From the NCBI GenBank assembly GCA_964199315.1, contig OZ116698.1:15686001-15750000 (forward strand): a DNA stretch of 64,000 nucleotides, in the 5' to 3' direction. The notes under the pieces were generated by a model, which was not told where the DNA came from, did not search any database, and saw nothing but the letters and a program-made list of their open reading frames with translations. The position numbers and the translations under genes were made by a program. The stretch comes from Orbicella franksi. Taxonomy: Eukaryota. Below, in pieces: positions 2,463-40,269 of the stretch; position 1 is the stretch's first letter, and each line of letters begins with the position of its first letter.

Positions 2463-3563
2463 GGAAGGACATGCTACCTGTACAACACACACAGTACGTC
2501 ATGTCAGAAATTTGTTTCCCATCTCTGCACTGTACTGAAAGGAATTTGCCATCAATCTTCTGTTAAAACTACGTAATTAGCTTCATGGCCGCCTTAAGAT
2601 GCAGTTGTCAAGAGTAACCCTATGACAAAGCTAAAATTAACAAGTGTTATAATTGTTGTCACTTGTTAACTTCATGTAATTGGGACTCAATCAACTATTG
2701 TGAAGAGAGAAAGCGATCATGGTGCATTGTGATCCACAATTTGATGCTGGTTTACCTCATTGGGTGAAAATATTCCGTACTGATATGTATAATAACAATT
2801 TTACAGATATAAATATTCCTAAATTATTTTGTGATCTTATAGTTCAGAAGATCTAGGATCATTCTGGCAGTACTTGATTTTGGCAGCTATTATAATATTT
2901 ATTTGTACCCTTCTTGAACAGTCACACAATTGGGTTTTTGAAGCTATGTACAACTTATAGTTATGTTATATATTGAAATGGGAGCTAAAAGAAACAGCTA
3001 AAAACAAAATATTCAAACCGAAATGGAAATAACTAAAGCAATGTGACAATTATAAGCTATATTTTGAACAAATGAAAATTTATCATTGTTCAGTAAGTTC
3101 ATTCTTCGACTGGGGCTGTGATAAGAGCCACAGTCTCGATAGTGCTAACAATATATAGCAATTAGAATATTGAAACAGAAATGTCAGTATAGGTGAATGT
3201 CTTTAATTAATGCTTGTATTATTAATATAATCAGGTGTACATATTTTTATTGAGCCATATTTTGGAATAAAAAATTAAACATCAAAAATTTATTCTGATG
3301 CAAAAAAGTCATTTATGATTTGAAGAAACTCTCCTTATGGCCTTAAACGTATGTCAGCTTGACTTCATGCATAACCTCAGTCTGTCATAAAAAAAACTCT
3401 GGTTCATATAATTCTCAGACTGGCAAAAATAGGATGTATGTGTGGTCGGGAAAGCTACTTGTTTTCCATAGTCTATAAATAAGCAGACAACATCTTGCTG
3501 ACCAAACAAATTTTCAGAGTTGAACTGACATTTCCTGTGGCTATGTACCCAATTTGCCAAACC

Positions 3564-3825
3564 CAGGGTTGCCACAGGTCAGGAAACAGTCAGGGGAAAA
3601 TTGACATTTTGCAGAAAAGTTGGGGAAAATTTCAATAATTTTACATGGAGGGCTTGAAGGCTGGAAGAAACAGTTGAGGTCACTGTGATCTCAATGGTGT
3701 TTTTCCTTAATGAAGTAGGAAAATATGTTACATGTTTGTTTTTTGTCAGGAAAATTCTATTTTTATCAGGGAAGAGTCAGAGAAAAGTCAGGAAATTTTG
3801 AAAAGTGACATCTGTGGTTACCACG
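3564..3825. mobile_element. Non-autonomous DNA transposon (CAGGGTTGCCAC ends); shorter related copy at about 27337-27445
   Basis: Begins CAGGGTTGCCACAGGTCAGGAAA and ends GAAAAGTGACATCTGTGGTTACCACG. The same termini recur at 27337-27445. Confidence 0.55.
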
Positions 3826-5749
3826 AAACCTTGTAAGGTAGACACTAAATACCCAAGGAGCAAGCACTGTTCTGAAAAAACAACAACAGTAAACTACTCA
3901 AATTATGCTTTTGTTAATTTATTCCAAAATACAACTAGCAATTTTACACCAAAGTTTACCAAGCTAATTTTCTTTTAAGATTTGCCTGAAGTGAATTATA
4001 ATCATTATGAACTTGCCAGCAAGTAAGTCAGAGCTATCAATGTCCTAGCTAGCTACACTTTGAACCTTGCAGCACTTCCTACTGCATTAAAACTACTCTT
4101 ACTTTTATGCTGTAATACATGAGCAAGGAGTTCTTGTTTATAATTTGTTTCTCTGCTAACCTGGTTTTATTATTGGAGCCTGAACATGGTGCTAATGGAC
4201 ACCTGTACTATTTATGTTTTTTTTAATGTGCCAAAATGGCTTCTTTAAACCTCGACTTTTGTTACTAACATGATTAATTAGTAATTGTTAGACCTTGCAT
4301 CATACAAATCAGGATATAAACATTCTTGATACCTCAGTTCAGTTACTAATGAAGCTATTTTAGAGGACCAGCCATCAATATGGTTTGCAAGAATTTTGTA
4401 CTAAAGCATTCTGAGGTATTTCTGTAATAATATACAACACAACTTATTTGGATAATGAATGGATATTGAACAAGTCTAACAGTTATTTTTATGCTGAAAT
4501 GAAATAGTTACAAAACGGTTGCAATACGTTACACAACATTTATAGTAGGGTAAAGGCATTTTTCAAGTGTTACTCGTAGAAAAAAGGCATTGTCAAAATT
4601 AAATGATGAAGTAAATTACAACTACCAGAAACATTTTTAAAAGTCAGTGACACATTTGTTGCGAGCTTCTGGAGTCTAAACCCTATAGGGAGAACTTGAA
4701 AAAAATGTAATGTAATGGTCTTCATCATAAAAGTAGAATTAAAAAAATCCATTTGAACCTAAAATTTAAAAAAGGGCCAAAAAAGGTACAAATACACGCA
4801 ATAAATCCTAAGGAGGAACAAAGAAATAGCTTAAAATGGAGAGGAGAGGATTATGTGTAACTTATGTTTGAGTCACTGATGCCTTTCTTCAGCAATATTT
4901 TTCTTTCTTTTGTTTTTCTTAGTTCTGATATGAATGAATTTTTTTTTAGTGTTATGCCTTTTCTCCAATTCCAAATCAGCTTTTCTTGTTGACTGGATGT
5001 TGACTGGACTCTAGACTCAGTTGACTGGAGAGTGACATAAGTACTTGAGCTGCTGCATTATCATTCCACGGCTGTATCTCAGGAGAAACTGCAATTCCTG
5101 TTCAAAAATTACAACATTGAGTTTTTTTTTTTTTTTTGCAGATCCCTCAATTGTACTGCAATTGTTTGACAACACCTACTATTAGTTTAGTACAAATAGC
5201 TCACAGATGCTCATCCACCAATCAATCTTTCGGTTGGCTGGACATTTAGAAAAGTTAGACACACAGTCAGACACACAGTTAGACAAGTTAGGCACACAAT
5301 CAGGTACACATGTTTTGCTCATTCTTACTGAATTTGACACATTCAGAGAGCTAATTGAGTCAGTCCATCATTGAGTTGGTCTGTCAGTGAGTGAGGGAGT
5401 GAGTTAGTGGATAGGAGAGTGAGTCAGTGATTCAGTCAGACAGAAAGCTAGTCATGTGGACAATGAGAAACTTCATCCACTTGTTTGCAAAACAGTCAAG
5501 TCAGTCAAGGATTCAGCAGGTTAGTCAAGCAGTTGATCATTCAAACAGCCAGTACATAAGTCAGGGAAAAAACTTAACAATGTTCAGCAGTTGTGTCTTA
5601 AGTTTGGTCAAGTGTAAAATCGGCCCCATCAGTAAGTCTTTCATTGTTGTAGCATAAGCTAGGGGCAGGAGATCTGTGCAAGATGAATTATTTTACTTCT
5701 AATTTAAACTGATGATTTGTTGGCCGCACCAAAAGAGGGTTGCAAGACC

Positions 5750-7220: not shown

Positions 7221-7431
7221 GAATAAAACGATCTTGTGTTTAAACTTGATTTAACATATAATTTAAGGTTGACTGAAACACGTTAAGCACTTTATATCGT
7301 CGCCGTTAATTTGAAGCGACCGAACTTGCCACAAATGTTGCGTTCAATGAAAGGTGAACGGCAAAAAGTTACAAAAAGGGCGCGAAATTGTGCAACCCTT
7401 TTCCCGCCAAAAATGATCCCTACCCTAGATG

Positions 7432-7965
7432 TAGGCCTTTCCACTAATGTTACGTACGCTCGCCTAAATATCTTTTCGGAAATTCTCAAAAAAATCTCGT
7501 AAATGACACAAAAAAAATAAATTCTGGATATCTTGGAAAACCCTCTAAATATCTTTTATTTTTGTCGTGAAAATACGCTGATTTTGAATCACATAGGCCA
7601 AAATTTTCAACGTTTTGTTGCAGTAGGGGTTGAGGAAGGAGATTCAGGCACTTCGATGTTACCAGTAAATTGCTGCTTCGATTTTGCTTTTTCGATGTTA
7701 CCAGCATACGCCATTATGGTAAATTACTGCTTCAGCGCTCTTAGTGATATGGAATACATTTTTCGAGAGGGAAATTGCTGAACTGAATTGTTTCTGGTAT
7801 AGAACTGAGTATTGTTTCAAGAAAATATTAAACGACCAAAACACAGGGCTAAGCGAAAAAGAGCGACGGATGTTTCTAATTTTATATATCTCTAAATTTT
7901 TTAAATATCTTAATATTTTCTAACTATCCCCCCAAAAAACATTCGGATATTTGTGGAAAGGCCTA
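7432..7965. mobile_element. MITE/non-autonomous DNA transposon about 210 bp upstream of the DMRT ATG
   Basis: Terminal inverted repeats TAGGCCTTTCCAC / GTGGAAAGGCCTA. Direct repeat CCCTAGAT at 7423-7430 and 7967-7974 looks like a target-site duplication. Confidence 0.6.
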
Positions 7966-9968
7966 TCCCTAGATCTCCCTACTGTTACCGTGCTATAAAG
8001 TCTAATAAAAGAAAAATCTTTCTTGGTGCATTTGAAAGTTTGAAAAACAAGGCATAAATCCACGAATTTTTATTAAAAATACCATTCCAGTACTCATAGT
8101 ATTATGACTAGGTTAACTACCGTATGCTACTTCACGTCAATTCTGTTTGTACACCAGCCTCTTGTCGTCTGCGCTTTCGGTATTCGCAACTTTCTATCCA
8201 CGAAGACCACTGAGATTCTCGTCCATACAATTGAGTCCTCCAAACTTGATCATTGTAACTCTTTTTTGTATATAATGTTACAGAAGTATGTTACATGTTC
8301 CCGCAAATACTATTACATCACTCTAATTCCGAATGAACCTGAATGACTTCCAGTTTTGAAACGTACTGAATTCATGATTCTATTGCTCACCTTCAAGGCT
8401 CCAACAGTCGTCTACAAACTACGTAAATTCAAGATTTGATAACGTGCTACTCGCCGTCTAGATCTCTTCTTCAGTCATCTTCTCATGGGCGGATCCAGGA
8501 CTTTTCAGGGGAGAGCTGGTACCTTAGGGTTGAGGGACCCCAAAATGTTGCAATTCAAGGATTGTTCCTAATCGAAAACTGTGACACTAGAAATACAACC
8601 CATGCCACAATTAAAAAAAAAGCAGTATTTGCCTTGATTCGAGTGCTTGGTGTTATTTCTACCATAAAATTCACCATCTTTTTTTTTGTATTTTTTGGTT
8701 CTCCAAGAGATGGAGGCCGAGCCACCCTATTCACCCCCTAAATCCACCCCTCCTTCTACATTATTTCTGAATCCTGCCATATTTTAGTTCAAGGTCCTAT
8801 GTTTCCAACTCTGAACTCTGCTACAGTCCTTGTCATAGCACCCGTTAATCAAATGTGAGTATACGATTAAGGCTGAGTGTGAGTAAAGTAATCAATTAAG
8901 TATCAGACGGGAAAAGTATCAGTGAAGTCTTGGCAGAGTATGGGTCAAGTATCAGTAAGACGTTGCCAAAGTGGCTGGCATACATTTCAGTCCAGCCTTC
9001 AGCATTCAGGACGTTTAAACTGGCTTACGGGTAGAATTTTTAGTAAAGTTTTCCTAACCAAAATATAGTAACGTCATTTCTGACCAGAATTTTACTTCCG
9101 TCTTAATACCCCTGTTTAAAAATCTGTCGAGGTCTGTAGGTGCTGTAACTGAATGTCTTTACTTAGAGATCAATCAGCGGGTACTAGGAAACCATCACCG
9201 AATCAGTGAAAATCTTACTTTAACCTTTGGAGGGGGAAGGGGTGGATGGAACTCCGCTGCAGGTCTTTGATCCAACAAGACATATCACCCCCAACTTGTT
9301 GAACAAGATAGCTCGCTTTTTAGTTAAATATATACATGTCAAAATGTGGTTGCTATGGCAATGTTATATGACATGGTGAAACAGTTGGATCATATCATTC
9401 ACAGGAGATGAATGAACAGCTACTGAAAGTTTTAGCATCACAGAGTAAATTGCCTTTTCAGAAAAACACTAAAATTTCAAGGGGGTGGCATCCACCACCC
9501 CACACTTTTAAGCCCAAGGATTAAGAATCTGGCCAATCAAATCATTTGTCTCTGGAGCTGCCTATGCCTTATGCCCAGGTCTCGTGGAATGAGAAAGTTA
9601 TGCTAAGAATATGTTCAAACATGTTCATGTAGCTTACAATGATAGGCTTTTTTACTAGCCTTGCTTGTGAGGGGGAAACCTAGAAAAAGAAAAAAATATC
9701 TACAGGAGCTCTCTATTTGGGTAAGTTGGTCAATGTTTAACATGTGAGACAGATTCCCTTCTCTTTCTGCTTGGTGAGAGATGAGGGGAACTCATCTCTC
9801 GCTGAGCTGAAAAAGAAGGGAATCTCTGTCTCACACAGCAGATAATGTTTCACAAGACAAGTAAACAGATCTTTTCTGCTTGTTGACCTTTATTAAACAG
9901 TTCCTAAAATGACCTTTTTACAATCCCTTAAATATTTTCTCCATTTGTTTTGATAGATGTCCCAAGAA

Positions 9969-12900
9969 CTAATCGGCTGGTTTGACTTCCATGGCTTGTT
10001 CAATCTGAGTCAAAGTATTATCCCACTGAACAAACTGTTTTGATAAGAGATTTATCTGTAAGAAATAATCAAGGAATGTATACCAGCAGTATTGATCTCT
10101 AGGGGAACAATTGAATTCGGACAGTGATTTACTTTGAAATTGTCTTAAATTTTTTCAACAAATCCTAACAGCCATATAGCCAGAGCTTATCCCAGTTCCT
10201 CAACCATTAAGCAACTAGGAGTATTGCTACCTTTCCCTGGATGGGATGCTATTCCATCGCAGGGTTACCCTCCAGCATTAATTCACCAGTGCCCATTTAT
10301 ACACCTGGGAGGAGAGAGCCGCTGTGAGAGTAAAGTGTCTTGGCCAACACAACACATGACCCTGGCCTGAGGTTGAACCCATTACACTCGATCCAGAATC
10401 CAGAGCACTATCCATAAGGCCACTGTCCTACCACACTCTAAGTCATGACACATATCAAAGGATACAATGTTGTTGTATGCTGTTAGAAGATTATGTAATC
10501 TTTCATCAACTCCAGTGAATTCTTCCTGTAACAGAACAAAACGTGACATCTGCCAGGTAAACTTTTAAGAATTGGTTCATGCTTAGCACGTACCTTTCAA
10601 GTTATAGATGACCTTATCTACATTTATATTTTGTTAAACATAACTGTGACAGATACTACCTTTTGCTGGATATGAAGTTCTACTAGTGGCTGTAGTTTGG
10701 CAGACCAGGTTGGCAAATCTATTTTTAAGTAAAAGTAGAGATGAGAATAAGAAACTGAAACATGTAGAAATGCAGATCAATGAGTGGGACATTGGAATGT
10801 GCAGTAAAATTTCATTTACATCTAAGTTACCACATCTTTAAGATGTTGTATGGATGGATGGATGTTGACTTTGTATCAAAATTATTTTTAGTCAAGTGGT
10901 GAAGCCAATATGGCAAAGTCAAGAATTGTATCAAAAGTTAAGAATAATAATAATTATTGCTTTCATAAATTATTTTGTAATTTGTTTCATTATTTTATGC
11001 ATCGTTTCGGGCATTACAGTGTCTGTAATTTTGATTTATTTTTTTCTGTGGAAAGACACTACTCTGAATATTATTCATTCCACATGAAATGTCTGAAATA
11101 AAATCCATTTTTCAGGCATCAGAGTACCACGAGACTGCAATACAAGATTACAGTTACCAAGATACTGCCAGTAAATTGTCTAATGCTGGAAGTAAAACAC
11201 TGTATAAGTCTTCACAAATTTAAAGGTGTCTAAAATTGTGGTGGGTTTAATGTCATTCAGAAGGTAGATGTGATTATGTTTTACCCCACAGGGAAGTATA
11301 GTTTGCTTTAATTACTTAGTTAGAAATCCTGTAAAAGATTATGCTTATCTAGCATAATGATTATTGCAACAAACCTTTGAGCAGTTCTGTAGTGACAACC
11401 TTTTTCAAGTCTTCAACTTGTCGAAGCTGATCTGCACATGCCATCAGCTGGCTCTCACCTAAGGAAGTCAACTAAATTTTATTGCAGGTATATCAAACTT
11501 GTTACAAAAGGACTGTTCATGTTCTAGGAAAAATTACGTGTCCATTTTTGCTTCCAGTTGTTGGATTCCAAGGAGCCACATGGCTCACGGCACATAACTT
11601 CAATTTCTGTAGAGAAAAGCGACTTGTAGTACTCCTATTCTCCAGATGGGATGCAAGTTTGTAGCATTTTAGTTAGGAGGTCTGTTATGTAACCTGTAAA
11701 TATGCTGGCAGAGATTTCTATGATACGAAAATCAAACAATATCACAAATGTACTTTGTGATACTGTAACCCTAACCTGCTATAATTATGTCAGCTTTAGC
11801 ATCATCTGTAAGTGAGGCATTTTCTAAGAACTCTGGTGAGAGGAATATCTCTAGCTCTTTCACTAAATAAAAATACAAAGAGTTCATAATGAGCTATTTT
11901 TTCTCCAGAATCATGTATTGGTATACATTGTCAGTCACAGTTTCCCGCTTATGGTGAGAAACAGCTTTTGACTCAAGTTATAAGGTAGGTAAGGACAAAC
12001 TTGTTACCAACCAGTCCACACAATAGGCTGATTTAGCAAGGGAATGGGAACGTCACTTGACGACGGCGCATGCAGTACAAATACCCAAATATGGTCAGAT
12101 GACAACTGCAGGGCATGCGGAATAACCTGGATTCTGTTCTAATTAAACCATATTTGGGTGTTTGTACTGTGCGTGCCGTCGTCAAGTGACGTTCCTGTTC
12201 CCTTGCTAAATCAGCCTAATAGGACCACTGGGACTTCCTCCTGCTTGAGATGCTAGTCTAATGTAACATTATCCTTTTGTCAGTAGTAATCATCACTCAT
12301 GGGCAGAGAAGCCATATGAGATTTACAGGAATGCAGCTAATTGCCACCTTGGCTCCCAGCTAATGTCTCCGGTTAAATAAGAGCTTATTGCCAGCTGACA
12401 TCTTGCTAGAAGACTTGAGGTAACTTTTAAGGTTTGCAGCCAGAAAAGCTGGCTAAGATTGTTTTTGAGAGCCTGCTTAGTTTTTTCATGGCTGCATTCC
12501 TGCATACCCAAAACAAAACTGAGATTAATTTTAATGTTTAATGGATGTGATAGCAATCAGTATAAAAAATAAGTCATGTCAGTAACTTTTATAACTCATA
12601 CTAGATAAACTTTGCTGATTAAGCATTGAGCATTTACCTGTAGCTTTTACATGTACTACACATGTCTTTAGACACCTCTGTGAAGTGTAGTAATTATACA
12701 ACACAGTTGAACAAATGTCAGACCTTCCATAGCTGACCAGCCAATTTCTGATCACTTCAAGTAAGACACATGGCCCCTTACAAGTGGTCAACAGGTCAGA
12801 CAGGTTCCTCTGAATAGCTGTTATTACAGTTATCAGTAGTTTGACATACAAACAAGGTGAAAGGGTCAATTCTGCTTTGTATTAACCCTTTCGCCTGGTT

Positions 12901-23015: not shown

Positions 23016-24710
23016 TTTTGTCTAATATGTCAACATTTACTATAACCAGTTTCTTAGGGGTTGCATTTGTTTTCAATAAATCATTATCAGTATCTATTAC
23101 TGTATTACTAACCCCATATTTATTAAAGAGAATGGAAAAAGTGTTTTCTGTGATTTATTGCTTTTCCATCTCTCTTGTGAAGCACCATACACAAGAAGTG
23201 ATATTTCCTCGTTTCAGTTATACATTAACCAGGAAGTTTTAAAATGAACAGATGAAACACCCAATACCATTTTCTGTGATAAAGCTATTCTTCTATTCCT
23301 GCATTGCCATGCCTCCACCATGTTAATGCAAGAGTTGACTGTGTGCCAGATGGAAAACAAGCAGTGTGGAAGTTGTGAAATAATGAGATGAATTATTATA
23401 AATTATATTTTATTTTTTTTTCTTATTATTTGACTCATGAAAGTTTGGGAGAACTTGAAAAAGCTGTGGAAACACTCGCCTGACAGCTTGTGTTCCCACA
23501 GCATTTCTTACTCTCCCAAACTTTCATTTGTGTTTCTATTTAACAATTAGATGAGCTTGAGATTTCCATTGCGTGATAGTTGACAAGGGCGCAGCCCCAG
23601 CCAACTATCATGCATAGAAATACAGAGGTAATATATCAAACAGAAAGACCATGTTTGACCACATTTTTGAACACTGAGAAGAGATTTGAAAATATGACGC
23701 GCAGTGGAGTATTTTTGATGAACTTCGAGGTAGCCTGCGAACAGGCTCCCGGCAAGGATGGAAAAAACTTTCAGTGAGCGCGAAACAGAAGAATTCAGAG
23801 AGCAAAGTGATCGGGATGTGGAAAGGGGAGCCTGTAGACTTTGTTTTTGATGTGCCTATCCGCCCTTGGTGATAAGCCTGTACCAAATCAGTCAATGAGG
23901 TAATTAGACCTGTCAAGAAGCTACATTTTCGGTACTTGCAAACAGTTCTAATCGAGCTAATCAAATAGCCGGGCCAGGCGTCATAATACAGAGTGCAAGT
24001 AAGCAACATGTTCACGGAATATTTCTCTTTTGTGAACATGTTGCTTACTTGCACTCTATATTATGACGCCAGTACTTTAAGAGCTTAAAACATATTTTGC
24101 AATACTGAAATGAGCCTAAAGAAATTATAGGCACATGATAGAGGTGTCAAACTCTGCGAAGCAACATGCAAATAACAGCGGAAAGTCCGGAAACCATGCC
24201 TTTGACCTCTAAAGAAAATTGCTATAGCACCACCGAACGGCTCCACTCCACTAGCTTCTACTTAAGATTCCTCCTCGTAAAAGAGCATAAAGTACCCTTC
24301 AGAATCACTTGTGAAATAACGAGAGATTGAGAGACCAAAACTTAAAAGAGAACGCCATTGTATACTTGACAGTACAACTAATACACCAAGCCTTCTCATT
24401 GTGGACTGCATGATGTCATGTTGATTTAGCTGGCAGAGTATTTTCAATGGCATGGTATGAAATAGTAATGCAACACTTTCTTGTGGTATACCATGGAACA
24501 TCCCACTTGTCAGTGATTAGTAGTTTCTTGGTATACACACTCACTAAAGGCTTGTGTGTATACGAGGAAAATAAAAGTGACTCGTGGGATATTCATGGTA
24601 TACTACTCAAAAGTGTTGGATAACTAGTATGTATTACTGAGTACCAAAACTAGCACTTAAGACAAGTTCAAAACAGCGTAACATGCCAGTAAATAATTCA
24701 CAAATTCAGG

Positions 24711-25704
24711 TTATCTGTAACTAGATGAATAGTATGATTGTTCAAGTTCAAATAAATTGAGAGCAAGTTCTTGTTTGAGGTTTAAAAGCTGCTGATCCGT
24801 TTGATTGGTCATCTCCTGAAATGTATTGCTTCGTTCGGAGATACTGGCGTTCACCGATGGAAAGTCATTCAAAATGAGAAACTCCTTCATGTCAGACACA
24901 AGCTTCATCAGTGATTCACCTGCCCTTACCTGAAAAAAAAAGGTTTCAATTTTATTTACATAATAAGGGCTCTTGACTGGTACATCAACTTGAGGGTTAA
25001 GTCACATTCGCAGCTATCCAAACTGCACTTGCCAGCCATGGTAGTATAGTAGTCATATGCGCACATGAGTAGTTTCGTTTGCTCTTTGTTCATTGGTGGA
25101 TGCAGACCTTGAGGGTGCTTGCCCTGCCAGTTTTTCTTCCTTCTGCAATTTCTTTTTAACCAAAATAAGGGGAAGCCTGAGTCCCCTGGCCCCTCCCCTA
25201 GATCCGCCACCGTTGTTAATTTGTCTTTTACGTAATTTGTATTCACCTATGCTGTAAATGTGTCACCTGAGCACCCTGCTGACCACCACTGCCGGATTAG
25301 CAAGGTAAAGGTAATTATATTAATTAAGTGAAAGTTGTTGCCCACTGACCGCACTAAACTATGACTAATGACAAGTCTATGTTGACCTATAAATTATGAC
25401 ACTCGGTTGACTTACAATGTTGGCAGCTCTGACGTTGACTTCATACTGATCCTGAGCTAACTGTGTTAGCCGTGATACTTGAGTTTCATTTTCAACCTTT
25501 GAGCAATACACACAGTAACAGACTTGGTTAACTGAGAATCAGAGAATCAGTATAGTAGGCATTCACGTGCAAGCTTACCTTAGAAGATTTCACAATTTCT
25601 GTGAAGTTATCCAGGATTGATTTTACATCATCTTTCAGGCGTTTCGTGTACGACTTCAGAAGAGTTTCTTTACTCTGGGGCAAAATCCTGCTTGGTTGTG
25701 ACAT
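24711..25704 (-). CDS. MED22: Mediator subunit 22 (Surfeit locus protein 5), 141 aa
   Basis: Coding exons 25704-25579, 25496-25416, 24929-24711. [68 protein letters not shown] and YYSSSYR* closely match the short human MED22 isoform. An acceptor 3 nt before the ATG implies a non-coding first exon. Confidence 0.95.
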
Positions 25705-26037
25705 CACCTGTAAAATCGAAAAGCGATAAACGATGCCTAGCAGAGCATTTGTTAAAACTTAAAAATTATACTCGAACAAAGACTGATTTCATCGTTCTTT
25801 CTCCACCATATGTTTGCCAAATTATCCGTCAAAACGATCAATCTCAATACACTTTACCTACAATATTCCGTGATCTCGTGTTCTCCGAAAAAGCACGACA
25901 GCGTCGTAAATTTTATCCGAAAACATTGTCAGCCATGTTGAATTTTTCCCATTTTAACCGCGCGTGGTGTATTGTGGGTAATATTTTGAAATTCCCAGGA
26001 GGCACTGCAAGCTTCCTCTTCGTCCGCCATCGTAAAG
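25705..26037. promoter_or_regulatory. Bidirectional MED22 / RPL7A promoter with putative MED22 5'UTR exon and intron
   Basis: CpG-enriched 333 bp between divergent ATGs. MED22 acceptor at 25708-25709, candidate donor AG|GTAAAG at 25857-25856, and a YY1-like CAGCCATGTT motif around 25930-25939. Confidence 0.65.
26012..26025 (+). promoter_or_regulatory. Polypyrimidine (TCT/5'-TOP-like) initiator of RPL7A
   Basis: CTTCCTCTTCGTCC lies just upstream of the RPL7A ATG, as is typical of ribosomal protein genes. The TSS is not mapped. Confidence 0.7.
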
Positions 26038-29000
26038 ATGGTAAGTCTTGAAATTCAGAAGTAATGCAAGCTTTGCTATATCTCTGCCATCTTATGTTTC
26101 TTTTCTTCTCGCGTAGTAATAAACTAACTTCCAGTATGTGTTATACATTAGTGCAAAGTTATTTTTGTTTTCTCCGGATTAATAGGGCTTGATTTTTGGT
26201 ATTGCTGCCGAGATTTATGTCTCGCGAATCATGTCCCCTCTCTTTGATCTACATTAGATCATTTGTAGGGAAAAATATTTTTTGATGTATGGCTAATAAC
26301 GAAACATATTTCGTCTACCACCTCAAACTTGAACCATCTTTAATTCGGTGCATTTTGCTGCCCTCTTTTTACGTGAATTTTTCGTCCATATATCAGTTTA
26401 AAGCTTCCCAGGTATTAAAATATTGAAGAAAATATTTAGCACGTGAGTCTTTGTATCTGCGATAATATTAAGTGTCAATTCATCAGTTCCGACGCTGTTT
26501 GCTACGTAAGATGGAAGGTTGTGATCCCAATCCCTATTGTTTGGAGATGGAAAAATTATATTATGAATTTGTCTGATTCCGTATATATTTGTATTTGTAA
26601 AACTATTTCTTGAAATTGTTTACAAGTATACCATCTGTGTTATATACATCATTCCTTGTTATTTTTAATTTTATTTAATATATTTCTTAATTTCACTGTT
26701 ATTATTAGTTGCTCAAAAGAGCATGTTCTATTAAATTTGAATGAAGAAGGGTCAGGGAGGAAAATATTTAAAGTATAAACTACACAATCCAGTGTTTTTC
26801 TGGGGAATGTATAAGTTGTGTGCTTATTTTGCAATCTGAAAAACAATGTACATGGACTAAATTGATTAAAGAGCCTGGTGCTGAGCTGTGATCATTAAAA
26901 TGTTTCCTCAAGTTGGAATAGCCTACCTTACATTGTGTTCAGACTTCATCAAATACAGCTTTCAAAGGGCAGGTTATTCTACAGTGTCCGTTTATGCAAG
27001 GGATTGATAATGCTATCTGTTGGACAAATCTCAATCCAGTGGACAGCATAGTTTGTCTTGTCAGCAGCCATTCCTTGGAAATGCATAGTACAATCCACAT
27101 GTCAGTGTTGTTTATCTTAGTTAAAGGAAAGTCTTTATCTATAGAGGTCTTCTTTCAGGGATACAATCTCATAAAGACCTGGTTCTCACTGTTCAAAGAT
27201 TGGATCTCAACACAGTGTTAACTATAAACTGGTTAAGTGTTGACAAAGCAAGGCATACTTATCCACCAGCTAATGATTTATCTTATGGACAGAGTTTCCT
27301 ATCGTTTGAACAGTGAGGCCTCTCTTTAGTTTTATTAGGGTTGCCACAGGTCAGGAAATGGTGAGGTATTTTTTGGTCTGGGAAATTTTATTTGTATGAG
27401 GGAAAAGTCAGTGAATTTTGAAAACTGATGTCTGTGGCAACAATGTTAGTTGTTGAACCTTTACAATGTACCTGTACTGTACTTGTACTTTTATGGCCTG
27501 TTAGAACTGTAAACAAGCAAACACTAATATTGTCTTTGATCTGCAGCCTAAAGTTAAGAAGGTTAAGAAGGTGGCACCTGCCCCATACACTACCTCCAAA
27601 CCAGTACCAAAGAAGGTCGTCAACCCTCTCATTGAGAAAAGACCAAGGAATTTTGGCATTGGTAAGAACAAGAGCTATATTATTGATTTGTTATTCTGGC
27701 TAAGGTCACAAAACTGAAAGTAGCTATTGTCAATTTAAATAGAACTACTTCGATGAATCGCACCTTTTTTTTCCATTAAAAAAAAAAAATGATCATGAGG
27801 AAATACAGAAATTATCAATATGTATTGATGGGAGTGTTGACTTTGATATAGCAAAATGTTTTCTTGCAGTTGTGATAGTTATAGAATGTGACGTTAGGAA
27901 TTGCTTTCATTTGCGTTATTTTGTGTGGTGTACAGTGGATTCCCTCTTACTCATTTTTACAGAGTAAAATTATTATTTTCTTTGGACATTAAGGTGGGGA
28001 TATTCAGCCAAAACGTGACTTGAGCAGATTTGTCAGATGGCCAAAGTACATCAGACTGCAAAGGCAAAGGAGCGTTCTTTACCAGCGATTAAAGGTTCCT
28101 CCTTCCATTAATCAGTTCACACAGACATTGGACAAGCAAACTGGTATGTTGTAAATTTATTTCCCACTATAACCATACTTAAGATTATCCTATCTGTTTA
28201 CACAGTAAGGCATAATATGCTTCAGTGCAGATCAGTCTAGATCATTTCCTAGGCAAGAACAAAAAGGTTTCTTGGAAAGGACATGTTGTGCACATGAAAA
28301 TGTGGGCTGCAAGCAAGATTGGTCACTTGTAGCTCCCAGAAAAACCTTTAATACACAGCAAAGATATAATATCATCGAAAGAAAAGATAACAACGTGCTA
28401 ACAATGATGTTTCCATCTGATTTGTGACAACATGGCCTTTGCCAGGCAGAATGTTGCTATTCCCATTAAGACATCTTTATTGATTATCATATGGCAAAAG
28501 GAGCAAAACAATAAGGGTAATGTGGTTCTGTACTCAGTTGTACTTGGTCCATTTTTAAAAGAAGGTTAATTCAATTTTTTGCCTGTTAAAGCTACCCAGC
28601 TTTTCAAGCTGATGCACAAATACCGTCCTGAAACTAAAGCAGAGAAAAAAGCTCGCCTCACAGCCAAGGCTGAAAAGAAAGCGGAGGGCAAGGAGGAACC
28701 AGCAGGAAAGAAGCCAGTTATTATCAAATATGGCCTTAACCATGTGACTAGTCTTGTGGAGAACAAGAAGGCACAGCTTGTGGTCATTGCTCATGACGTT
28801 GACCCCATTGAGGTAAGGCATAGTTAACAGGTATAGACTAGTAATCTAACTTATTCTAACTTATTCTAACTAGGTTACCACACTAGTGTGACCACAAATT
28901 CAGTTTTCAAAGTGGGGCTAAGATGTACCACTGTAGGCCATTCTGCTTGAGAGTAAAGGATTTACAGACTGCTATACAGGAAGGTACATCAGTTACATAA

Positions 29001-30538
29001 TTAACTGTTATCAATGTGAGGTTCTTTTGTTAAAAAAAAGTACATGAGGTGCAAGGTAGCATTAAAAACTCACAGATAGTGAAAATTGAACAAGAATGTA
29101 ATTGGTGGCTTTTCACAAATTCAATTAAGTACAAACACTCTATGCTGTGATTTAGCCAAGTTTCACTTCATTTGTACTTTGCCCTTCATTCTCTGTGATT
29201 AATTCCTGAATTGTGGTACCTTTTATTGACAAATTCATGGTCATTTCAGCTTGACTAAAAGCCTGACGATCTAATATTTTCTTCAAACCTGTTGCACGGA
29301 AATATTGCATTTCTGTGTGATTAACAGTGATGATTCGAATGTTACCACTTGTGTCGTAAATTGCAGTAACATGCTGCAAATAGAAGGCACAATTTCAACT
29401 TTGTGAAATATGTTCCTGTAACTTGTAACACAAAAAGAAATACAGGCAGCCATACTTTTTAAACACAGGATTGTTTTGTGACAAGTTGATACTAAGGAAA
29501 TGTTGCTTGTATGTCTTGACCTTAAAAGCCAAATCTGTGAGCATGAAGTTAGATGGAGAGATAAAAGATCTTCTTTGAGCAAACCGTTTAACTCAGAGAG
29601 CATATAACCAATTATTTTTGCAGCTTGTTGTGTGGCTGCCAGCTCTGTGCAGGAAAATGGGTGTTCCGTACTGTATTGTGAAGGGAAAAGCCAGGTTAGT
29701 GTGTCTTCATATTATCAATCACTCTTAAATCTTACTCAGGTTTACAGTATCCTCCTTTGCAGTACACGTCTTTACACTAGCTGTATAACCTGCAAGCAAA
29801 GTTATATAAAACCATTAATTTGATGGCGACCCTGTATACTACGTAGTGGAGAAATTGTTTGGGTGGAATCAGAAAAAGGGTGAGGGCTTGAGGGTTTTTT
29901 CTTGTTATACTTATTTTTTCTGGAGGAAACTTGTGGCATAAGAGATCTGGTCTAAAATCAGAGGCAGTAAGTTTGTGTTAAATGTTTCAACTCCGATATG
30001 ACTTTTACAGTAATGTTTAGTTGTGCAACTCTGGAAAATTTCCATACCCACCAGGGGTGAGTTGCTTTCAAAAGCTGAAATTTGAAAAGGAAGATAGTAA
30101 GCTAAACTGGAATTTCAGGAGGGATGGGGGTTAAATGAAAAAAAAAAAAAAAAAAACCCTGAAAAATATTTTCTGCAACTACACATTGGACCTGATTTTT
30201 GTGACAGTCTAGTATAGAACCAGACACAGATTGTCCAGCTTAGTTAGAAGAGTTGTTTTAGTTTCACTACTGATTAGATTGTAAGGAGCTTATTTTATCT
30301 TGGTGCCTTTAGGTTGGGTAAGGTAGTACACAAGAAGACAGCCACAGTACTGTGCTTCACTGCTGTTCGACCAGAAGACAAGAACAACTTTACTAACCTT
30401 TGCGAGGCTGTTAAGACCAACTTCAATGAGAGGTTCGATGAGATCAGAAAGCACTGGGGTGGTGGTGTGATGGGAAACAAGTCCCAGGCGGCTGCACACA
30501 AGCTTGAAAAGGCCAAGATTAAGGAGATGAAAGTCTGA
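26038..30538 (+). CDS. RPL7A: 60S ribosomal protein L7a/eL8 (Surfeit locus protein 3), 261 aa, 6 exons
   Basis: Exons 26038-26040 (ATG only, then gtaag), 27547-27661, 27994-28143, 28592-28812, 29624-29694, 30313-30538 total 786 nt. Motifs [90 protein letters not shown] at 30563-30568. Confidence 0.96.
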
Positions 30539-30816
30539 TGTGTACAAACTCTCTCGGAATGTAATAAAAAATTATTACCATCGAATTTTCCATGTTTCAA
30601 TTTTTGATATTGTATATCATTAAAGCTGAAGTATTCCCATCATTTTTGTTTGGGTCTCTGCACATGCATGTTCATTGTGATCCACACATTTTCATCCTAA
30701 TGCAGGAAGTGTCTAGGCGGGACTAGACTTGAGGGAATTTCTATGATCAAATTTCTATCCCTCGTAATTGTAAGGCTAATGAAAGGGGTATCAGAGAGAA
30801 TTCCTCAACTCATTTA

Positions 30817-37773: not shown

Positions 37774-39016
37774 ATAAACAAGTGAAAATTAGCGATAAGA
37801 AAGAACGTTTCGGTGACATCGTGACACCATTTTCAAGTTCAAATGCAAAAAGATAAACTGTCAGACAATTCGCTCAAGATTAACATTGTTCGTTATTACA
37901 TATGCAAAGTCACGCAAATAGTTTTGCTTGAATTGAGTTGAGAGAGGGTGTTAATTCTCTAATTAGCAGTATTTCATGCACTAAACAATCGAACGTATTC
38001 ATGCACTTCCTGACAACGGAAAAATGTCTTTACGGGTCTTTCGGAACAATATTGTTCGTTAATGACGTGTTTGCCAATGGAAGATGACTGTTTAGTGTGT
38101 TCAGCCACGCGTTGGTGCAAGTGCCTGAGAGGAAAGCCTACATAGCCTACATAGCTTGCATCGCACAAGTCACATTGAAGTTTATAAATTACACGTTGTT
38201 GGTTAACAATAGGCGGGTTAATCTCATGCACTTTTAGCTCTCGCTGGGTCTTATCACCAACAAAAACCGGTTGAATGACAGTGTGGGTCTTCAAGCTCAG
38301 GTCTTTCAGCTGCTTACGGACAAAGTCTGTCGAATCCTGGGCAGGACTATTCGGTCGGTTGGGTTCTCTTTTTGGGCAGGTGTTGGTTGCGGGTCTTCAA
38401 CTTCAGAGGCGATAAACGACTTGACTGTAGAGTTGATAAAGTGTTGTGGATATTTAAGTCGGGAGAAAACTGCTGTCAAACGGTCCCATTCTTCAGAAAA
38501 ATACGACCAGCACGATGATAAGCGATATGCACGGTATACATACATCACCTTTATTTCACCTCGGAATTACAAGAGTAGTTGTATAGTTAGACCATGCTGG
38601 TCAAGCATGGTTTTCAAAAGTCCTCGTTTATATCGCATGTCGACATGGCTCTGGTAGTGGAGCAAAAGACCCGTGTTAGTAGTAGGTTTTATGTAGACTT
38701 TGGTCTCAATTTGAGGAGCTCTGTTAAGCGGCAGTTGCATTCCTAGAAAAGGAAGCAGACCATTACTCTCTCTCTCCATGGTGAACTTCACTGATGATTG
38801 GCAGTTGTTGAGCGCTTGAAGAAAGGTAGCTGCTGATGCTGTGTCAGGCATTATAATTAAAGTGTCGTCAACATATCTCTTGTAAAATGAAGGCATTTTG
38901 CCTTCATCAACCAGAGTTTCTTCAATGGATCCCATGAAGACATTAGCGAGCAGTGGCCCGAGTGGAGAGCCCATGGCGACGCCATCGGTCTGTTCATAAA
39001 GTTGTCCAATGAACTG
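37774..39016 (-). mobile_element. Penelope-like retroelement, 5'-truncated and frameshifted (left arm of palindrome)
   Basis: GVAMGSPLGPLLANVFM, YKRYVDDTLII, TKVYIKPT.TG..L.Y.S and GIY-YIG remnant VIYKLQCDLCDASYVG...HLHQRVAEH on the minus strand. Confidence 0.9.
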
Positions 39017-39032
39017 GAACAGTTGGTCTGGT

Positions 39033-40269
39033 CAGTTCAATGGACAACTTTATGAACAGACCGATGGCGTCGCCATGGGCTCTCCACTCGGGCCACTGCT
39101 CGCTAATGTCTTCATGGGATCCATTGAAGAAACTCTGGTTGATGAAGGCAAAATGCCTTCATTTTACAAGAGATATGTTGACGACACTTTAATTATAATG
39201 CCTGACACAGCATCAGCAGCTACCTTTCTTCAAGCGCTCAACAACTGCCAATCATCAGTGAAGTTCACCATGGAGAGAGAGAGTAATGGTCTGCTTCCTT
39301 TTCTAGGAATGCAACTGCCGCTTAACAGAGCTCCTCAAATTGAGACCAAAGTCTACATAAAACCTACTACTAACACGGGTCTTTTGCTCCACTACCAGAG
39401 CCATGTCGACATGCGATATAAACGAGGACTTTTGAAAAGCATGCTTGACCAGCATGGTCTAGTTATACAACTACTCTTGTAATTCCGAGGTGAAATAAAG
39501 GTGATGTATGTATACCGTGCATATCGCTTATCATCGTGCTGGTCGAATTTTTCTGAAGAATGGGACCGTTTGACAGCAGTTTTCTCCCGACTGAAATATC
39601 CACAACACCTTATCAACTCTACAGTCAAGTCGTTTATCGCCTCTGAAGTTGAAGACCCGCAACCAACACCTGCCCAAAAAGAGAACCCAACCGACCGAAT
39701 AGTCCTGCCCAGGATTCGACAGACTTTGTCCGTAAGCAGCTGAAAGACCTGAGCTTGAAGACCCACACTGTCATTCAACCGGTTTTTGTTGGTGATAAGA
39801 TCCAGCGAGAGCTAAAAGTGCATGAGATTAACCCGCCTATTGTTAACCAACAACGTGTAATTTATAAACTTCAATGTGACTTGTGCGATGCAAGCTATGT
39901 AGGCTTTCTTCTCAGGCACTTGCACCAACGCGTGGCTGAACACACTAAACAGTCATCTTCCATTGGCAAACACGTCATTAACGAACAATATTGTTCCGAA
40001 AGACCCGTAAAGACATTTTTCCGTTGTCAGGAAGTGCATGACAACGTTCGATTGTTTAGTGCATGAAATACTGCTAATTAGAGAATTAACACCGTCTCTC
40101 AACTCAATTCAAGCAAAACTATTTGCGTGACATTGCATATGTAATAACGAACAATGTTAATCTTGAGCGAATTGTCTGACAGTTTATCTTTTTGCATTTG
40201 AACTTGAAAATGGTGTCACGATGTCACCGAAACGTTGTTCTTTCTTATCGCTAATTTTCACTTGTTTAT
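39033..40269 (+). mobile_element. Penelope-like retroelement, 5'-truncated and frameshifted (right arm of palindrome)
   Basis: FNGQLYEQTDGVAMGSPLGPLLANVFM..RYVDD (Penelope RT) and VIYKLQCDLCDASYVG..QRVAEH (GIY-YIG). Near-exact reverse complement of 37774-39016. Confidence 0.9.
40200..40240 (+). ncRNA. Minimal Penelope-type hammerhead ribozyme variant (U3-A8)
   Basis: GAAC-TTGAAAAT-GGTG[TCACGATGT]CACC-GAAAC-GTT-GTTC gives stem I GAAC/GTTC, core UUGAAAA (C3U with compensating G8A), stem II GGTG/CACC, GAAA, and a palindromic ACGT stem III. It sits at the element's 3' end. Activity is untested. Confidence 0.5.

Follow-up and report, generated by a model that had tools for sequence, protein, structure and literature searches.

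The genes for the Mediator head-module protein MED22 and the ribosomal protein RPL7A stand head to head, and are both expressed, in a 64,000-nucleotide stretch of the Orbicella franksi genome (assembly GCA_964199315.1, contig OZ116698.1, positions 15,686,001 to 15,750,000 of the forward strand; hereafter the window, with coordinates counted from its first base). MED22 is on the minus strand and RPL7A on the plus strand, with exactly 333 bp from ATG to ATG. We conclude, with a probability of roughly 0.85, that the two form an expressed divergent pair served by one compact bidirectional promoter, an arrangement that was already present in the ancestor shared by cnidarians and bilaterians. In mammals and birds the same two genes, as Surf-5 and Surf-3, form one junction of the Surfeit locus (Garson et al., 1995, Genomics 30:163, cited in PMC9929512), a textbook case of unrelated housekeeping genes packed into a very tight cluster.

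Gene models were built by reading positions 24400-30800 on both strands and joining exons according to reading frame and the GT-AG rule; RNA-sequencing (RNA-seq) evidence came from coral data, two raw poly(A) runs together with two sets of contigs, placed on positions 24650-30600. The models and the RNA data agree with the original prediction, made from the sequence of the window, on the divergent arrangement and its 333-bp spacing and on the structure of both 5' ends. MED22 encodes 141 amino acids in three coding exons on the minus strand (25704-25579, 25496-25416, and 24929-24711), and all its introns are of the GT-AG type. The last coding exon (24711-24929; 72 codons and the stop TAA) is defined by frame, splice sites, and the RNA-seq joint 24929/25416, and carries a match to the Pfam family Med22 (PF06179; 57.4 bits against a cut-off of 26, E = 2e-15). 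The middle coding exon (25416-25496; 27 codons) has RNA-seq joints on either side, tens of spliced reads confirming each of the two coding introns, and the second exon (25579-25707) consists of 3 nt of 5' untranslated region (UTR) and 42 codons, with the ATG at 25704 and the acceptor reading ttttacag followed by GTG ATG. The position of this acceptor, 3 nt before the ATG, had been taken to imply a non-coding first exon, and such an exon is present in the RNA: an additional intron at 25708-25857 (joint 25707/25858) is found in raw reads and in two independent contig sets, and an RNA contig covering 25856-25955 is spliced to 25705. The non-coding exon thus starts at or beyond 25955 and extends to 25858 (25858-25955 being its minimum extent), where it ends in the minus-strand donor AG/GTAAAG, and it includes a YY1-like ATGGCTG motif.

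MED22 is a single-copy gene in the 497-Mb coral genome. Its product is identical at 140 of 141 positions to that of Orbicella faveolata, at 127-133 to those of Acropora, Porites, and Pocillopora, at 109 to that of Nematostella, and at 84-92 to those of spiralians, a bee, and a shark; by this comparison it is the orthologue of the proteins named MED22, and, on the same protein evidence, the window is from a robust-clade stony coral, Orbicella or a close relative. The RNA runs that contain this stretch are coral samples, so that the earlier assignment to a probable cnidarian was right. A short hairpin with a weak mir-124-like Rfam match lies just 3' of the MED22 stop codon (24523-24571, minus strand; E = 0.16, with 22.7 bits where the gathering score is 49); the match is probably due to chance.

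RPL7A, likewise single copy in the 497-Mb genome, encodes 261 amino acids in six coding exons on the plus strand (26038-26040, 27547-27661, 27994-28143, 28592-28812, 29624-29694, and 30313-30538). The first of these is the ATG alone, followed directly by the donor gtaagt, as had been predicted; the joint 26040 to 27547 is found in the RNA, and all five introns are confirmed by hundreds to thousands of spliced reads. Exon 1 (26016-26040) appears to begin in a pyrimidine-rich CTCTTC tract resembling a terminal oligopyrimidine (TOP) or TCT-type start, continues as a 5' UTR of ~22 nt, and has the ATG as its last three bases. On the exon-1 side of the joint 26040/27547 there are 23-25 nt in the spliced contigs, and the loose end CGTAAAGAT is present in 710 reads, which therefore puts the start of RPL7A at ~26016, within the CTCTTC tract; the tract lies 25 nt ahead of the last base of the ATG, and the position, being derived from contigs and reads, is approximate. 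Exons 2 (27547-27661) and 3 (27994-28143; more than 2000 spliced reads) are supported by the sequence model and by RNA-seq, and exons 4 (28592-28812), where the L7Ae domain begins, and 5 (29624-29694) in addition by Pfam, both being matched by Ribosomal_L7Ae (PF01248). The last exon (30313-30591) contains the stop codon at 30536-30538 and an AATAAA signal at 30563-30568, and RNA molecules end at a poly(A) site near 30591, 23 nt past this signal. At two positions in the gene the RNA differs from the assembly: 28641 is T rather than A in all RNA reads, a synonymous GCA-to-GCT change, and 30490 is A rather than G in about half of them. Both reflect strain or species divergence of the sequenced colonies from the assembly.

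A bidirectional pair is commonly one whose members are on opposite strands with starts less than 1 kb apart, and here the MED22 5' exon reaches to at least 25955 and RPL7A is transcribed from ~26016. The RNA-supported 5' ends are therefore at most ~60 bp apart, leaving the interval 25956-26015 for a putative shared core promoter. This interval is at the centre of a 1.2-kb patch (25500-26700) in which CpG is not depleted, with observed/expected ratios of 1.0-1.2 as against 0.07-0.36 in the body of RPL7A, 0.07-0.53 in flanking gene bodies, and a mean of 0.50 for the window. The composition points to an unmethylated promoter flanked by methylated gene bodies, and the patch corresponds, in an invertebrate, to the CpG island found at the 5' ends of vertebrate Surf-3 and Surf-5. 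The likeness to the mammalian and avian junction (Garson et al., 1995) extends to the divergent orientation of both orthologues, to the closeness of their 5' ends in a patch that is CpG-rich or CpG-undepleted, and to the RPL7A start, in coral a probable one, in a pyrimidine tract, with a first exon that is very short.

Between the two start sites is a candidate Staf/ZNF143-like element of 18 nt (25992-26009, plus strand), the sole such site in the window. Staf/ZNF143 sites are defined by CCCR at positions 3-6 and C at position 12 (PMC3082894), and the coral element has CCCA and C at these positions; it matches 14 of the 18 positions of the consensus, a score equalled in 4 of 2000 shuffled sequences. 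In the Nematostella intergenic region (9742-10001 of its locus, L013) there is again a site with 14 of 18 matches; it is oppositely oriented, and 1 of 2000 shuffled sequences does as well. YY1-like ATGGC motifs are found just inside both the MED22 and the RPL7A transcripts. Both kinds of motif are candidates only, recognized by their sequence. The coral region thus resembles human Staf/ZNF143-dependent bidirectional promoters (Anno et al., 2011; PMC3082894) in its very short distance between transcription start sites and in having an 18-nt candidate element near them; it is unlike them in that the coral element is a putative binding site and that the spiralian promoters described below have no significant motif.

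These observations are best explained by a compact shared promoter that would drive strong, TOP-type transcription of RPL7A in one direction and weak transcription of MED22 in the other. Both core promoters would occupy a single nucleosome-free region and share at least some factor sites, for which the Staf/ZNF143-like and YY1-like ATGGC motifs are candidates. Any chromosomal breakpoint between the genes would then damage one of them, and this would explain why the pair has persisted for over 600 million years where genomes rearrange slowly. Within a single run, read depth is 300-900 over the very highly expressed RPL7A and 5-15 over MED22, a difference of ~50-fold. Such a large difference in output suggests that what constrains the pair is the architecture of a shared promoter and not a requirement that both genes be expressed equally.

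To see how far the pair extends among animals, MED22 orthologues were collected by two protein searches and their genomic surroundings inspected for RPL7A. The sample comprised eight invertebrate and early-vertebrate genomes; five further MED22 representatives, on transcript contigs or on other contigs whose upstream sequence was too short or lacked RPL7A, were uninformative and are not counted. MED22 has RPL7A as its immediate upstream neighbour, on the other strand, in the sea anemone Nematostella vectensis (258 bp between the ATGs, in the 2007 and the chromosome-scale assemblies alike), the brachiopod Lingula anatina (416 bp), the nemertean Lineus longissimus (418 bp), and the scallop Argopecten irradians (~2.6 kb). 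In all four species the neighbour is a true RPL7A orthologue, with 58-94% identity exon by exon in tblastn searches with the coral proteins as queries. The peculiar start of the gene is conserved as well: in five of five species (the coral, Nematostella, the scallop, Lingula, and Lineus) the RPL7A ATG is directly followed by a GT donor, and a pyrimidine tract is found 20-25 nt upstream of the ATG. In Argopecten the annotated 289-residue protein begins at an upstream ATG and has an N-terminal extension; since an ATG/gttagt exon at 7416-7418, following a TOP-like tract (locus L014; region 7416-7487), fits the conserved ATG-only exon better, the annotated start is probably an artefact.

The pair is thus seen, in the same orientation, in Cnidaria (two orders), Mollusca, Brachiopoda, and Nemertea as well as in vertebrates, and by the measure of at least three distant phyla it is an ancient conserved microsyntenic pair. 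It could in principle have come about by chance, MED22 and RPL7A having been paired independently in corals and in vertebrates, and head-to-head pairs that include ribosomal protein genes are indeed common. Against this, identically oriented single-copy orthologues are paired in five of the eight sampled genomes, from four phyla, and for unlinked genes the odds of such a pairing are ~1 in 10,000 or less per genome. We give convergence next to no probability: that each lineage brought the two genes together by itself, in one and the same orientation, is not credible, and the idea is effectively refuted. Because the pair is present in cnidarians, in three spiralian phyla, and in vertebrates, it predates the cnidarian-bilaterian split, a single origin before that split, followed by several losses, being the simplest history. 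The original prediction had proposed a pre-bilaterian module, to be checked by microsynteny, and had named lack of linkage in other cnidarians as a sign of coincidence; with the pair in Nematostella, Argopecten, Lingula, and Lineus the proposal gains support, and in the other cnidarian inspected the genes are linked.

A more serious alternative is that the pair is old and is kept for no reason of its own, an ancestral arrangement retained passively, with no shared regulatory function or selective value, because the target for breakpoints between the genes is tiny and rearrangement is slow. The ~50-fold difference in expression fits this explanation, as do the 2.6 kb between the scallop ATGs and the loss of the pair, with no obvious consequence, in the bee, the bryozoan, and the elephant shark; conserved synteny is, moreover, a known trait of the lineages in which the pair persists. 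On the other side are the coral 5' ends at most ~60 bp apart, the ATG spacing of 258-418 bp in the coral, Nematostella, Lingula, and Lineus, and the retention of a Staf-binding-site-like element in both coral and sea anemone. At such a spacing promoters physically overlap, and "no shared function" is therefore hard to tell from "shared promoter". On balance we consider purely passive retention less likely than not, while giving it more weight than any other competing explanation.

Several points weigh against a shared promoter of such age, and they concern the sample, the expression data, and the promoter itself. The sample is confined to two cnidarian orders, the three spiralian phyla with the pair, a bryozoan, a bee, and vertebrates. 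The 10-kb flanks of MED22 contain no RPL7A in Watersipora (the bryozoan), in the bee, or in the elephant shark, which makes the pair dispensable. In the elephant shark (GCA_018977255.1, MU249839.1:19509403-19534603) the place upstream of MED22 is taken by SURF1 and a zf-DNL gene, both on the MED22 strand, so that at least one assembly of a cartilaginous fish has the classic pair broken up. The expression gap argues against tight co-regulation, and, taken together with the repeated losses, it means that equal co-expression is not required. The 5' end of MED22 is the end of an RNA contig, the starts being located to less than nucleotide precision; and the Staf/ZNF143-like motif is not significant in the promoters of the three spiralians (scallop, Lingula, and Lineus). 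We nevertheless retain the inherited bidirectional promoter as the best explanation of the data as a whole.

As regards the rest of the Surfeit locus, the original prediction had noted no SURF1, SURF2, SURF4, or SURF6 in the window and had proposed the pair as the ancestral core of the cluster. The four genes are indeed absent from the window, while SURF2 lies 57 kb before its start. Adjacent and divergent MED22 and RPL7A are the feature of the vertebrate-type cluster that the coral possesses. SURF1 and SURF2, which would share a head-to-head promoter, are at 9.62 and 15.63 Mb on the contig that carries MED22 (C1); neither the 3' overlap of SURF2 with SURF4 nor the tail-to-tail arrangement of RPL7A and SURF1 (~100 bp) is found, there being nothing SURF-like downstream of RPL7A in the window; and the six genes are not gathered within tens of kb with SURF6 beside MED22, SURF6 being on contig C3. 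With the other tight junctions absent, the vertebrate-type Surfeit cluster is not present in coral. In this the coral differs from the Surfeit locus: SURF2 (C1:15,629,088-15,629,937; its exons are short, 45-54 amino acids) is ~81 kb from the 3' end of MED22, SURF4 (C1:19785900-19789633; 19.79 Mb) is ~4 Mb off, SURF1 (C1:9620671) is ~6 Mb off, and SURF6 (C3:17174986) is on another chromosome than MED22. TSC1 (C1:9082322-9093929; 9.08 Mb) is also on the MED22 contig, 6.6 Mb off. In Nematostella, RPL7A has TSC1 (Hamartin, 2732-4702 of its locus) as its next neighbour on the side away from MED22. In human, both TSC1 and the Surfeit genes map to 9q34.

Could the coral arrangement be the decayed remnant of a full Surfeit cluster that was already present in the eumetazoan ancestor, rather than an early stage preceding later assembly in vertebrates? 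C1 is 44.7 Mb, or 9.0% of the genome, and the probability of finding three or more of the other four Surfeit genes on the chromosome of MED22, as is the case for SURF1, SURF2, and SURF4, is ~0.003; the chance that any of the four would be within 82 kb of MED22 is ~1.3e-3 genome-wide and ~1% given the same chromosome. These figures speak for a remnant. The distances of SURF1 (6 Mb) and SURF4 (4 Mb) are, however, what ordinary chromosome-scale linkage would give, SURF6 is on a different chromosome, and the 10-kb flanks of the Nematostella, Lingula, Lineus, and Argopecten pairs contain no other Surfeit gene. An ancestral full cluster thus seems decidedly improbable. The linkage of SURF1, SURF4, and TSC1 in coral fits chromosome-scale linkage conserved with human 9q34, to which the closeness of SURF2 is an extra that is possibly meaningful.

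If the bidirectional pair is that old, it would later have been joined by other genes: the vertebrate Surfeit cluster may have condensed around the old pair from genes that were on one ancestral chromosome. In its full form, in which the cluster condensed around a pre-existing pair with SURF2, SURF1, SURF4, and TSC1 already co-chromosomal and SURF2 already within ~100 kb, and in which the Staf-like element is among the oldest bidirectional-promoter elements conserved in animals, this history is offered tentatively, at somewhat less than even odds. The earlier idea of an ancestral core accordingly stands in part: SURF2 at 81 kb and SURF1 and SURF4 on the same chromosome agree with it, and the missing tight junctions and the separate location of SURF6 do not.

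The type of pair and the Surf-5/Surf-3 junction were already known, and what appears to be new is their reach to cnidarians and spiralians. MED22 and RPL7A are already annotated as neighbours in public coral and sea anemone genomes. A survey of 64 species that included Nematostella, Trichoplax, Ciona, and four other fishes lists MED22-RPL7A in five vertebrates (zebrafish, chicken, human, mouse, and Xenopus) and in no other species (Davila Lopez et al., 2010, supplement; PMC2871058). The cnidarian and spiralian extent of the pair was not found stated in the literature searched, and the tables of Irimia et al. (2012; PMC3514665) may already list it. Like the anciently conserved metazoan pairs of Davila Lopez et al. 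(2010) and Irimia et al. (2012), this one joins unrelated housekeeping genes that have stayed head to head in different phyla, and here too the constraint is presumed to lie in a shared promoter.

The result is a range extension and involves no new mechanism. Dating the MED22-RPL7A junction to before the cnidarian-bilaterian split places it among the oldest known bidirectional promoters, and allows the ancient core of the Surfeit cluster to be separated from later vertebrate additions. Armes and Fried are said to have found, in 1996, that Surfeit homologues are dispersed in invertebrates. Lineages that keep the pair and those that have broken it (insects, the bryozoan, the elephant shark, and pufferfish) provide a natural experiment on what a shared promoter constrains.

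The coral genes also differ from their vertebrate counterparts in content. Coral MED22, at 141 residues, has no C-terminal extension of the kind that brings the vertebrate protein to ~200 residues. Vertebrate RPL7A hosts the small nucleolar RNAs (snoRNAs) SNORD24 and SNORD36. In the coral, unlike in vertebrates, no snoRNA was detected in the RPL7A introns, either by Rfam searches of the whole window at gathering thresholds and of positions 24500-30800 at E values up to 1, which yielded no RNA of any kind beyond the weak mir-124-like hairpin, or, for box C/D snoRNAs in the five introns (26041-30312), by a simple scan for C box, D box, and terminal stem; divergent members could escape both. Among the open reading frames that flank the pair (21-50 kb) no Pfam family was found apart from reverse-transcriptase fragments. 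These RVT_1 fragments, on both strands at 38567-39479, ~8 kb downstream of RPL7A, have the appearance of a decayed retroelement.

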